The position numbers and the translations under genes were made by a program. A DNA stretch of 63,598 nt, counting the filler, from Ministeria vibrans ATCC 50519 (lineage: Eukaryota; Protista; Filasterea): the NCBI GenBank assembly GCA_943704425.1. It is 5 parts of 5 records of this genome, joined end to end, with 100 filler letters (N's around TTAATTAATTAA, not from the genome) between each part and the next. Parts side by side here need not be neighbours in the genome. Positions count along the whole stretch, not along the records: positions 14,110 to 28,912 come from CALSCP010000232.1; 4 more parts are not named here. The stretch is one strand, 5' to 3'. Shown here piece by piece: positions 15,271-22,650 of the stretch. The stretch's first letter is position 1, and every line of letters starts with the position of its first letter. Below the pieces are notes generated by a model that made no database searches, had not been told where the DNA came from, and worked only from the letters and a program-made list of their open reading frames with translations.

Positions 15271-18200
15271 CTACACGTCTTCGCCGTCGCTGTGGGGGAA
15301 GAGACCGCGGATACGGACGCTGCTCGACGGGGCCGGCAGCGGGTCCATGTCAACGTACTGTGTGGTGTCGGACGTGCGTCGCAATGACTTGGACTCGGGT
15401 GCGCTGCTCTCGGTCCACCTCGAGCCCGATCTTGTGGCGCCGTGGTGGGTGAGCGTCACATACTCCACGCGCGCCTCCTGGTCGTCCAGGGCCATGTTGG
15501 TGCCGGCGCGCGAGCCCAAGGCCGACATTTCAAGGGTGGTGGATTGGGACTTGAGAACGACCGCGCCGTCGCGAGACGCGTTGCGGCGCAGAAGAAGTAC
15601 AATGATAACAATGAGGACAATGACAATAACTGCACCGACTGCACCAATGAGAATGGGGATGGTGGACGAGCTTGACGACGACGATCCTCCCGCGTTGGGA
15701 TTGATCGCTGTGGCGCACACGGAGTCGCTGAAGCCGGTGGGGCAGATGCACGTGAATGCAGTGGGGTCTGTGGCGGCGTCGAGGCAAGTACCGCCGTTGG
15801 CGCACGGGCTCGAGTCGCAGGCAATGGTGGTGGCGAAGGCGGCCACAACAGTCAGATGCGACATTTTGCCGCTCACTGTGTTTCCAGTCGTGTCCACGGA
15901 GACGTCCTGCAGAATGGAAAATGGTGCGCCGTTGCTCGACGAGTACAGACGCATGTGGCGCTGCTCGTCGGTCGTTAGTCCTGTGTTAAGCTGCAGCGTG
16001 ACCGTGATGGGGACGTTGAATGTGGTACCACTTGGGCGGATCTTGCGTGTGGGCGAACCAGGAGTCAAACCGCCCGCAGGCGCTGTTCCCACAGTCTCGC
16101 CAGTTGTGTCGGTGATCGTGAAGACGGTGTTGGACGAGACGGCACCCGTGGGGAAGTTGATCGTCGTATCACCGCCCGTCAGTGTGGATGAGGTAGCTGG
16201 ACTAACGGTGGACGTGGCATAAACGAGTGATGCACAGCGATTTCCCCAGTGTGTTGCTGGACAGGTACAGGTAAACCCATTTGTTTGGTCGACGCAGGTG
16301 GCGCCGTTAAAACACGGAATCGATTCACACTCATCAATGTTGTTCTCGCAGAGTGTTCCCGTAAAGTCCAACGCACACAAACAGTCAAAGCTGTCCACTC
16401 CATCGATGCACGTAGCGCCATTCTGGCATGGTGTCGAAGCGCACTCATCAATGTTCACCGCACACGTTGCGCCAGTGTACCCTGACGTGCATGTGCAAGC
16501 AAACTTGTCGACTCCATCCACACAAGTGCCACTGTTCTGGCACGGCTGCGACTCACACTCATCAATGTTCTGATCACACGTTGCGCCAGTGTACCCTGCC
16601 GTGCATGTGCAAGCAAACTTGTCGACTCCATCCAGACAGGTGCCACTGTTCTGGCACGGCTGCGACCCACACTCATCTATGTTCTGATCACACAGAGCGC
16701 CAGTGAGTCCCTCCTGACAGACACATGCAAAACTGGAAGCGCCCACTGACTGACATGTTGCCGTGCCCACACACGGGTTGCTCTGGCAGTTGTCCGTTGT
16801 CGAATCGCAGATGCTGCCGGTAAAGCCAGTGCTGGTACAGTCGCAAGAGAAGCCGTCAACGGCGTCTTTGCATATTCCCGAATTGGCGCACGGTGATGAT
16901 GCACACTCATCAATGTTCTGATCACACGTTGCGCCAGTGTAGCCTGCCGTGCATGTGCAAGCAAACTTGTCGACTCCATCCACACAAGAGCCACTGTTCT
17001 GGCACGGCTGCGACTCACACTCATCAATGTTCTGATCACACGTTGCGCCAGTGTACCCTGCCGTGCATGTGCAAGCAAACTTGTCGACTCCATCCACACA
17101 AGAGCCACTGTTCTGGCACGGCTGCGACTCACACTCATCAATGTTCTGATCACACGTTGCGCCAGTGTAGCCAGTGACACACGAGCACGAATGCTGGTCA
17201 ACGCCATTCATGCACGTTGCGCCGTTGACACAGGGCGCCGATGCGCACTCGTCAATGCCCAGTCCACAGGTGGCGCCAGTGAAGCCGGCCTTGCACACAC
17301 ACGTAAACCCGTTCACACCGTCAGTACACGTACCAGCGTTTTGACACGGCCGCGAGGCACACTCGTCAATGTTCACAGCACACGTCGCGCCCATGTACCC
17401 CGGTATGCACGCACACGTAAAGCGTCCCAGTCCCGTGCTCGGACTCGACGACACTACGACCTGTCCCGTCATCGTCGACGGGTGGAAGTTGCACAAGTAC
17501 GTCACAGTGCCGTCCGAAGTCATCACCTGTTCGTACGTCTCCCCACTACTAATCGCTCCCGAGTTGAATGACAGCGGTCCTGATGAAGTCGTCACCGTGT
17601 GCACATTCGACAGAACCGTCCAGCGCACAACATCTCCCACATTTGCCGTATTCGATGCGGGCACGCAGTTCGCACCAATACACCAGTTGACGGCAACGAC
17701 ACCCTGTTCGATGCACGTTCCTCCATTCCCACAAGGATTAGACGCACACTCATCAATGTTCTGATCACACAGAGCGCCAGTGAGTCCCTCCTGACAGACA
17801 CATGCAAAACTGGAGGCGCCCACTGACTGACATGTTGCCGTGCCCACACACGGGTTGCTCTGGCAGTTGTCCGTTGTCGAATCGCAGATGCTGCCGGTAA
17901 AGCCAGTGCTGGTACAGTCGCAAGAGAAGCCGTCAACGGCGTCTTTGCATATTCCCGAATTGGCGCACGGTGATGATGCACACTCATCAATGTTCTGATC
18001 ACACGTTGCGCCAGTGTACCCTGCCGTGCATGTGCAAGCAAACTTGTCGATTCCATCCAGACAGGTGCCACTGTTCTGGCACGGCTGCGACTCACACTCA
18101 TCAATGTTCTGATCACACGTTGCGCCAGTGTAGCCAGTGACACACGAGCACGAATGCTGGTCAACGCCATTCATACACGTTCCGCCGTTGACACAGGGCG

Positions 18201-21200: not shown

Positions 21201-22650
21201 ACCGTCGACGAATCAAGGCCAAGCGCCTTGAGCTGGGCCAACACGGCGCCCACAAGCGAGTCGATGTACGAGACGGCGCCGTAGTAGTGGCGACGCAGGG
21301 CCAGCTGGTAGTCGTCGGGCAGGGACGTATTAAACTTCGTCGAGTAGCCCGAGGCGTCGGGGTAGTTCGTCAGTTCGCTGAATCGGTTCCACGACACTTG
21401 CGAGAAGTTGGGTTCGGGAACGAATCGGTTGGGTGCAAGCCCAAGGGTGCTGTACAGGTTGACGTACTCCTCAGGAATCGTAAATGGCAGATGGGGCTAT
21501 AAGAAAAATAAACAAACAAACAAACAAACCATCATATTATACGTCTTATTGGGATTCTTTACCTTTTTGAATCCCATTGCCATAAAGAAAGGTTGTTGGG
21601 AGGTGCCATTAGCAATCTCCCCAAGCTGCTTCATGGCTTCTTGGGCAATCAAGTCGTCCATCAGAGGAGTTGTCTGGCGCTCGGTCGGTGTGACAGAGAC
21701 GTACGAGTTGGCATTGCGCCAATTGTTTGGAGGTGAGTAGTAAGGCTCGGTCCACGAGAAGGCAGCGTCTTCGCCGCCCGACGCAGTTGTTCCGTGAAAG
21801 ACTTTGCCCAGGCCGAACGTGCGGTAGCCGGCGTTCTTGAAATATTGCGGAATTGTGGTGAACGCTCCATTCTGAATAGATGCAAAGAAAGACCACAGTA
21901 AAGTGAGTGAGTAATTAGGAAGAAGAGTATAATTAAGTATATCACACACACACACACACACACACACACACACACACACGNNNNNNNNNNNNNNNNNNNN
22001 NNNNNNNNNNNNNNNNNNNGCTCTCTCTCTCTCTCTCTCTCTCTCTCTCTCTCTCTCTCTCTCTCTCTCTCTCTCTCTCTCTCTCTCTCTCTCTCTCTCT
22101 CTCTCTCTCTCTCTCTCTCTAAAGGAAGATACGTACGTCTCGAAAGTAGTCTTCGTTGCCATAGACTCCGGTGCTAGCCGGACGACGTCCAGTAAGAAAG
22201 CTTGCTCGCGAGGCGCCACACACAGACTGCTGGGCAAAGGCTCGTGTGAATGTCACCGACTCAGCCTGAAACTGATCAATGTTGGGAGAAGACACATCCG
22301 AGTGTCCGTACGCAGGCAGCAGAGGTTTGAGGTCATCAATGAGGACCAATAGGACGTTCTGGGGAGCTGATTGTGCTGGCAGGGACCTACAGATCATGAA
22401 TAAAATTTGTAAAAGACGCGTTGTTTGTTGCGGTTATCGCGTGTGAAACCAACTCCTCCTGCCCTTGTTTGATTGTCCACGCGGCATTGGTGGGTGGAAT
22501 ATTGTAAGGAATCAACATAAAACAATAATTGAAGGGGTGGGAAGCGCTGGTAGAGTGTGCGTCGCTCGATCGTGAGGAGGGAAGGGAAGCGGTGAAAATA
22601 TATTCCTACGTTGCCAACACAAGAACGATCGTCACGACGTATCTCCACAT
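15271..22650 (-). CDS. Type-I membrane multidomain protein: signal peptide - sulfatase (IDS/S1_7-like) - YHYH-like - PAN-like - 20 EGF (cupredoxin inserted in EGF9) - ZU5-like - TM - cytoplasmic tail
   Basis: Manual GT-AG splicing is in phase at exon 1 (MWRYVVTIVLVLA|TSLPAQSA) and at every junction from the last sulfatase exon through the YHYH exons into the 15271-19004 exon. Sulfatase motifs LIDDL, CGASRASFLTG, TTIPQYFKNAGY..GKVFH, KPHLPF, SDHGWHLG. YHYH-like motifs NNIPPHAIGKFP, DLCDGHP, YHQH, HSPLIGWAFDGFPIYGP, DLDACN, PYILGCYRG. cbEGF NIDEC repeats. TM IPILIGAVGAVIVIVLIVIIVLLL. The N-gap at 21981-22019 lies inside an intron. Confidence 0.85.
16670..18349 (-). repeat. Recent intragenic duplication of a ~600-nt EGF block (17745-18349 vs 16670-17389) plus 114-nt single-EGF tandem copies
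   Basis: EGF4-8 and EGF10-15 are nearly identical at nucleotide level; the CESQPCQNSG..DKFACTC unit recurs several times. Confidence 0.9.

Follow-up and report, generated by a model that had tools for sequence, protein, structure and literature searches.

A single spliced gene of Ministeria vibrans predicted to encode a sulfatase-headed membrane protein on an EGF stalk

We analysed a stretch of DNA from the filasterean protist Ministeria vibrans ATCC 50519 (NCBI GenBank assembly GCA_943704425.1), here called the window, which comprises 63,598 nucleotides (nt), filler included, and joins five parts of the genome end to end; the gene described below lies in the part derived from record CALSCP010000232.1 (positions 14,110 to 28,912). 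As read from the strand and then checked by script, one protein-coding gene with 15 exons (E1 to E15) and 14 introns runs along the minus strand between 22650 and 15271; its coding sequence of 6075 nt is equivalent to 2025 codons and amino acids. The region is eukaryotic in character: coding blocks of 55-60% GC are interrupted by short AT-rich stretches with microsatellites. From the N- to the C-terminus, the product would consist of a signal peptide, a head resembling iduronate-2-sulfatase (IDS), a Pro/Thr linker, a YHYH-like region, a PAN-like module, 19 EGF units with a cupredoxin, a ZU5-like module together with EGF 20, a transmembrane (TM) helix and a tail. We think it likely that this is one gene of a compact-genome eukaryote, and that it encodes a 2025-residue type I membrane protein in which the sulfatase head is carried on the EGF stalk.

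All 14 introns have GT donors and AG acceptors, range in length from 48 to 265 nt and have consistent phases, and none of the 15 exons contains a stop codon in the implied frame. The first exon, E1 (22650-22610; this and all features below are on the minus strand unless otherwise stated), opens with an ATG at 22650 and a hydrophobic signal-peptide start (MWRYVVTIVLVLA..), and its donor, GTAGGA, is of phase 2; this exon is assigned from sequence and phase. It is followed by E2 (22386-22137), E3 (21871-21563), E4 (21496-21174), the 31-nt E5 (21095-21065), E6 (21010-20311), E7 (20175-20009), E8 (19944-19813), E9 (19753-19711), E10 (19662-19608), E11 (19536-19482), E12 (19412-19334), E13 (19276-19229), E14 (19178-19068) and the long terminal exon E15 (19004-15274), which encodes 1243 residues and is closed by a stop codon at 15271-15273. 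The longest intron, intron 2 (21872-22136; 265 nt, GTACGT..CAG), contains a (GA)n repeat, a run of N at 21981-22019 and a (GT)n repeat. By comparison, the interdomain introns are short: 135 nt between the sulfatase and YHYH parts (20176-20310), and 63 nt between the YHYH and EGF parts (19005-19067). Prokaryote-style calling of open reading frames (ORFs) cuts this single eukaryotic gene into pieces, one of which has become public as a 242-residue protein (P0009), a mechanical call from the same DNA that ends in intron 6 and is carried in public protein sets. The 57-nt intron 12 (19277-19333) is open in frame and is crossed by another mechanical ORF, at 19203-19400; it is because this ORF reads through the open intron that it yields the only Pfam YHYH match.

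Spliced sequence was recognized by searching sequencing runs with the segment 18900-21940. Four runs from one other study (X1 to X4) contain ~0.62 of the sampled words, which is the value expected from exons alone, whereas two runs from another study (X8 and X9) contain 0.97-0.99 and are DNA-like. When the contigs of the runs were aligned to 18700-21945, intron-less contigs of X1, X2 and X3 were found to join E2 through the YHYH exons into E15, whereas the DNA run X8 retains the introns. In X1, one contig of 3020 nt runs from E2 to past 18700 and extends beyond both ends of the segment; its blocks correspond to 21871-21563, 21496-21173, the 31-nt exon, 21010-20310, 20174-20009, 19944-19813, three small exons, 19412-19332, 19274-19076 and 19023-18700, and the contigs of X2 and X3 have the same exon blocks. 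In all three runs, the contig records place 20310 next to 20174 (1586/1587 in X1), which is the canonical sulfatase/YHYH junction, and all eight YHYH exons (E7 to E14) and their junctions are present. The canonical intron 14 (19005-19067) is removed in X2 only, where the joint has a depth of 10 against 9.6 for the upstream exons. At the other end, the loose end behind 21871 in the contigs of X1 to X3 matches the final 30 nt of E2 in reverse complement; the RNA therefore joins E2 to E3 in frame, phase 0 to phase 0. Given this joint and the collinearity with IDS (E2 corresponds to chain residues 12-85, and E3 begins at 89), the N run at 21981-22019 falls within an intron and conceals no exon.

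The original prediction for this locus, made from the sequence alone, had claimed one spliced gene spanning all of these parts, and the 14 GT..AG introns, their fitting phases and the RNA-like contigs that join the parts agree with it. The ATG at 22650 that it had given for the signal-peptide exon proved exact, as did the two junctions that it had proposed: GGA G|GG AGC from sulfatase to YHYH, where intron 20176-20310 is spliced out in X1, X2 and X3, and CGC G|GC TAC from YHYH to EGF. Transcripts that stop behind the sulfatase exon, together with an independent start for the remaining parts, would have spoken for separate genes; this pattern was not observed: intron 6 contains no contig and is spliced out in three runs.

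The sulfatase domain occupies E2 to E6 (20311-22386, with introns 2-5), and its assignment draws on Pfam, on alignment with IDS and on the junctions in the RNA-like contigs. All searches were run exon by exon. The Pfam Sulfatase family (PF00884; cut-off 25 bits) is matched by E2 (1.9e-11, 44.3 bits) and E4 (5e-9, 36.3 bits), with E3 falling slightly under the cut-off (2.4e-5, 24.3 bits), and the three matches fall in order on profile positions 1-73, 80-170 and 183-242. In a search of PDB sequences, the best solved relative of each of these exons is human IDS (4.2e-19, 4.1e-10 and 1e-13 for E2, E3 and E4, respectively), and the alignments are collinear. The metal-binding Asp-Asp and Asp-His pairs and the catalytic Lys and His residues of IDS are all matched, within the motifs LIDDL, C..R, GKVFH, KPH, SDHGW and NEWTK (EWTK). 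The formylglycine motif is C-G-A-S-R (22206-22220), a CxAxR variant that aligns to C-A-P-S-R of IDS; the C/S-x-P/A-x-R motif is followed by ..LTG, within CGASRASFLTGR at 22185-22220. The C-terminal subdomain, in E6, ends in the usual ..LYD..DP.E..NL.. motif and is followed, at the end of the exon, by a Pro/Thr/Ala-rich linker from sulfatase to YHYH (20343-20440), seen in the translation. E6 had no meaningful match among PDB sequences, and, among 1.84 billion cluster representatives, no relative of more than 42% identity apart from P0009; its longer matches are plain sulfatases, double sulfatases, a sulfatase-GH113 fusion (P0053) and a PKD protein.

The YHYH-like region is spread over E7 to E14 (19068-20175) and is recognized by its motifs and a weak Pfam match. 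The translation contains, in order, ..NNIPPH.IGKFP.., NPN, DLCDGH..YHQH, GWAFDGFPIYGP and DACNFRVH..LYHSTY: E12 opens with YHQH, a motif of YHYH type that follows DLCDGH, and a second copy is degenerate (LYHSTY). The His/Cys-rich region is probably metal-binding. The YHYH family is itself uncharacterized; one member is predicted to bind zinc via three histidines (bioRxiv 10.64898/2026.10.18.759936). No meaningful match to E7 was obtained among PDB sequences, nor any in the atlas search. Next, E15 residues 28-85 (18748-18921) form a PAN/apple-like module with a six-cysteine pattern and a Pfam match to PAN_3 that lies below the cut-off; nothing meaningful was matched by this segment among PDB sequences.

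Beyond the PAN-like module, the order within E15 is EGF 1-8, EGF 9 split by the cupredoxin, EGF 10-19, the ZU5-like module, EGF 20, a run of Ser, the TM helix and the tail. EGF 1-8 (17767-18669) are assigned by the Pfam EGF, hEGF and EGF_CA families and by the cysteine pattern, EGF 10-19 (16234-17361) by Pfam and the cysteine pattern, and EGF 20 (15715-15819) by the cysteine pattern. The stalk had been predicted to hold 20 EGFs, and we count 20 six-cysteine units (Pfam PF00008, 4.3e-114), 14 of which begin with the calcium-binding pattern D/N-x-D/N-E/Q. In animals, C1-x-S-x-P/A-C2 and C2-x4-S/T-C3 are the Notch-type O-glucose and O-fucose sites, respectively; the former type is present in every one of the 20 EGFs here, and the latter in 17. 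EGF 10-19 include a duplicate of EGF 4-8: EGF 4-8 and EGF 10-15 arose by recent duplication within the exon and are 95-96% identical in DNA (16637-16936 versus 17714-18013, and 17002-17301 versus 17965-18264). This duplication breaks short-read contigs at ~18321, and it could hide copy-number errors in the assembly.

EGF 9 (17380-17748) is interrupted between its third and fourth cysteines: C1-C3 lie at E15 residues 419-430 and C4-C6 at residues 530-541, with the second half of the unit matching Notch EGFs. The insert, E15 residues 435-527 (~93 residues; 17422-17700), is, by sequence, a cupredoxin of the type-1 copper class. As an excised segment it scores 22.7 bits against Pfam Copper-bind (PF00127), above the cut-off of 21.2, and it matches the plastocyanin structure 1BXU (1.2e-5), to whose ligands the candidate copper ligands His468, Cys504, His507 and Met511 (E15 numbering) align. 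The presence of a cupredoxin, as originally predicted, is thus upheld, but its place is not between EGFs: it is nested inside one of them.

The ZU5-like module is a juxtamembrane segment of 138 residues, taken to be all-beta (E15 residues 924-1061; 15820-16233). Its Pfam match to ZU5 is weak, and an atlas search gave a weak lead to bacterial ZU5 clusters (0.88); no match was found among PDB sequences. After EGF 20, the translation continues through the run of Ser to a TM helix of 24 residues (IPILIGAVGAVIVIVLIVIIVLLL; 15589-15660), which is followed by RR, and to a cytoplasmic tail of 105 residues plus the stop codon (15271-15588) that had no match to any Pfam family. Two tyrosines of the tail lie in the motifs VEYVTL and QYVDM; such motifs could arise by chance, and they are no more than suggestive of a signalling role. 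The presence of a helix and a tail is as predicted originally, whereas the labels YHYH, PAN and ZU5 of the same prediction lean on Pfam matches below threshold.

Several observations weigh against reading the locus as a full-length, catalytically competent fusion of these domains, and they concern the labels, the active site and the transcripts. With regard to the labels, the match to Pfam YHYH (PF14240) has 18.8 bits (E 0.0017; cut-off 25) and covers the E13 stretch (GWAFDGFPIYGP) only, that to PAN_3 has 15.2 bits (E 0.019; cut-off 21.1), and that to ZU5 has 14.9 bits (E 0.033; cut-off 21), although the latter covers profile positions 19-96 of 97. For the YHYH region, the search by single exons lowers sensitivity, as it is divided among eight exons of 14-55 residues; the other YHYH-region exons, searched singly, gave no Pfam match and are too short to score. 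Single-sequence AlphaFold models were of little help: that of EGF 9 with the cupredoxin is all-beta, but its predicted local distance difference test (pLDDT) score of 35 makes it unusable, and that of the ZU5-like module with EGF 20, also all-beta, reaches a pLDDT of only 45.

With regard to the active site, all seven of the nearest full-length sulfatases with a recognizable motif have CxPxR rather than CxAxR. FGE activates sulfatases of the CXPXR type, and those of the CXAXR type are modified by anSME in prokaryotes (PMC2459300); given this, the head, as its motif reads, may be poorly matured or inactive. The best-surviving alternative, which we nonetheless consider unlikely, takes up this point: if CxAxR were to go unconverted in the eukaryotic secretory pathway, C-G-A-S-R would mark the head as a non-catalytic, lectin-like module, and the protein would be a receptor for adhesion to, or recognition of, sulfated glycans. 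All of the other catalytic and metal-binding residues are kept, however, which argues for selection on catalysis. Moreover, Pro-to-Ala variants of the formylglycine motif keep partial conversion by eukaryotic FGE.

With regard to the transcripts, X1 to X3 are taken to be spliced RNA, for which the loss of introns and the run-to-run differences in retention argue, although the RNA nature of the runs is itself guessed. Their support reaches from E2 to ~18320 in E15; E1, its junction and the part of E15 below ~18320 lie outside it. X1 and X3 retain the 50-nt intron 13 (19179-19228), which leads to a stop codon, whereas X2 removes it; X2 additionally has an unspliced contig, 18994-19096. Furthermore, some contigs of X1 and X2 lack the stretch 19024-19075, and X1 uses this joint (19023|19076); read in the sense direction, its removal causes a frameshift to a stop before the EGF exon.

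These contigs could be taken to mean that the main products are truncated, with retention of intron 13 or 14 terminating the protein within the YHYH region or directly behind it and so yielding a secreted sulfatase-YHYH enzyme, the full fusion being a minor form and the EGF exon belonging mostly to another RNA, either antisense or with an internal start; in keeping with this, the depth of contigs over 18321-19005 in X2 and X3 is ~3x that of contigs on the sulfatase and YHYH exons. We hold this to be rather improbable, and somewhat more so than a lectin-like head. The depth of the canonical joint in X2 matches that of the exons upstream; contig depth, being a single figure per contig, is in any case a poor measure; and a product that stopped at intron 13 would lack the last motif of the YHYH region. 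Moreover, the splice signals of the 19024-19075 stretch (GTAAGA..GGTAG) lie on the plus strand, as for an intron of antisense type, and the joint is therefore probably antisense-derived: the simplest reading is that an antisense RNA covers the start of the EGF exon and was merged with the mRNA by an assembler blind to strand. Taken together, the ~3x contig depth and the plus-strand joint, within 18321-19274, suggest that the 5' part of the EGF exon is also transcribed in antisense. Separately, we considered an EGF-only product from an internal start, which was judged unlikely because the ORF begins with MKNKHTRSYV.., which is not a signal peptide.

That the fusion is an artefact of assembly or annotation (through the merging of two or three adjacent genes, or through a wrong join at the gap), as the N gap at 21981-22019, the fragmented ORF track and the end of P0009 in intron 6 might invite one to suppose, is very improbable, given that contigs from another study span the gap intron and every domain junction, that DNA contigs of X8 cover 18700-20177 and 20259-21945 unchanged, that an independent metagenome contig reproduces 21271-20216 at 99.5%, that the domains are separated by introns of no more than 63 and 135 nt, for which neither stop nor start signals have to be assumed, and that P0009 is a product of mechanical calling.

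The metagenome contig in question, ENA ERZ23497376 (SCHR19-1_SAMN09406036; positions 1-1056), which is the source of the P0009 call, has three of its five differences from the window inside an (ATT)n intron, and it points to the presence of the same organism, or a near strain, in that environmental sample. Elsewhere, relatives of the whole arrangement were not forthcoming. A search with E15 residues 925-1243 returned EGFs of Delta, Jagged and Notch only, with no orthologue and no self match; metagenome scans with E7 and with E6 gave no match; Rfam gave none in the gene region; and, among the papers listed by a literature search, none contained YHYH together with sulfatase. The architecture had been put forward as unfamiliar, and we likewise encountered none with the same layout within the reach of the searches (the C-terminal module, E6 in 1.84 billion representatives, and the literature on YHYH with sulfatase). 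As it stands, the layout is better described as not found than as absent, and it would appear to be a new arrangement of known domains: each part is familiar, and the novelty, within the same reach, lies in the combination of an IDS-type head, a Notch-type TM EGF stalk, a YHYH region and a blue-copper domain inside an EGF.

If the prediction of a membrane-anchored fusion is correct, the sulfatase head would be held far from the membrane at the tip of a rigid, calcium-stiffened and glycosylated EGF stalk, where it could cleave sulfate esters on glycans that belong to the coat of the cell itself, to prey or to the environment. Metal sites would be added by the YHYH and copper modules, the ZU5-like juxtamembrane module could be a point of cleavage or shedding, and the tail could dock adaptors. 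RNA forms with retained last introns might give rise to a truncated, secreted form, and this retention may be regulated. One could go further and envisage an enzyme-receptor in which the sulfatase, perhaps together with the metal site of the YHYH region and redox-active copper in the stalk, senses or edits sulfated glycans, with an output via shedding at the ZU5-like module or phosphorylation of VEYVTL and YVDM, and with intron retention as the switch between secreted and anchored forms; we regard this composite scheme as a long shot, but, were it true, it would define a class of surface sensor that has no described counterpart. A sensor or editor of sulfated glycans at the cell surface had also been proposed in the original prediction, and the CxAxR motif counts against that functional reading. 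More simply, a protein active at the surface would be a sulfatase tethered to a protist cell and working on sulfated glycans outside it, would place the YHYH family in a functional context and would illustrate how a domain can be inserted into an EGF. Protists commonly have mosaic surface proteins, and the function is one that we infer; the interest of the protein is, therefore, moderate.

The window also contains neighbouring genes. Immediately upstream, an intron-less gene on the plus strand (22961-25222) encodes a 753-residue GH95-like protein (Glyco_hydro_95_cat, 8.9e-40), the best 120 relatives of which are 36-43% identical; all of the named ones among these are bacterial (Cytophagales, Thermoflexibacter, Spirosoma, Planctomycetota and Verrucomicrobia), making it a candidate for bacterial-to-eukaryote transfer on the basis of sequence similarity. 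This gene and the sulfatase-EGF gene are arranged head to head, their ATGs being 310 nt apart, which hints at shared regulation in glycan breakdown. Further along are a tubulin-family gene (25678-26911, plus strand; Tubulin GTPase domain, 3.6e-16), whose C-terminal 304-residue ORF had no relative at E <= 1e-5 in a search of 5.8 billion proteins, and, at 27999-28586 on the minus strand, an ORF with a match to DUF427 (NTP_transf_9; 2.6e-6).

Comparison with known systems places the stalk closest to Notch, Delta and Jagged, with which it shares a long tandem array of EGFs, calcium-binding starts, both types of sugar site and type I topology. However, the Ministeria array is topped by an enzyme domain and has a copper domain nested in it, and it falls outside the Notch-pathway families: neither in the 1259-residue ORF nor in the tail did Pfam find any of the LNR, NOD, ANK, DSL, MNNL, heterodimerization or RAM families. 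The nested domain resembles plastocyanin and amicyanin in its length of ~90 residues, in its His...Cys-x2-His-xn-Met set and in its matches to 1BXU, 5FC9 and amicyanins; those proteins are free electron carriers, whereas this domain sits in the Cys3-Cys4 loop of a stalk EGF and has a His-Met spacing of three residues. With YHYH proteins (PF14240), the eight-exon region shares G.AFDGFPIYGP, D.C.GH and YH.H in the family order, but it is spread over small exons, has a degenerate second motif (YHSTY) and forms part of a fusion with a sulfatase.

The head itself is most like human IDS (PDB codes: 5FQL and 6IOZ; SulfAtlas S1), as seen in the metal-binding and catalytic residues, the collinearity of E2-E4 and the motif of the C-terminal subdomain, although that subdomain is very diverged in the Ministeria protein, which, moreover, has CxAxR in place of CxPxR. 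Human IDS is a stand-alone, soluble lysosomal enzyme of ~550 residues, whereas here the corresponding domain is the N-terminal head of a predicted membrane protein of 2025 residues. Sulf1 and Sulf2 act at the cell surface. They and certain bacterial fusions, such as a GH78-sulfatase (PDB code: 6HR5) and the sulfatase-GH113 protein P0053, are further sulfatases that work extracellularly or form fusions with other modules. However, Sulf1 and Sulf2 are secreted 6-O-endosulfatases of another subfamily that are retained at the cell surface through a charged insert, whereas the Ministeria protein would rely on a TM helix and an EGF stalk; and, whereas the partners in the bacterial fusions are glycosidases, those of the Ministeria sulfatase are modules of receptor type.

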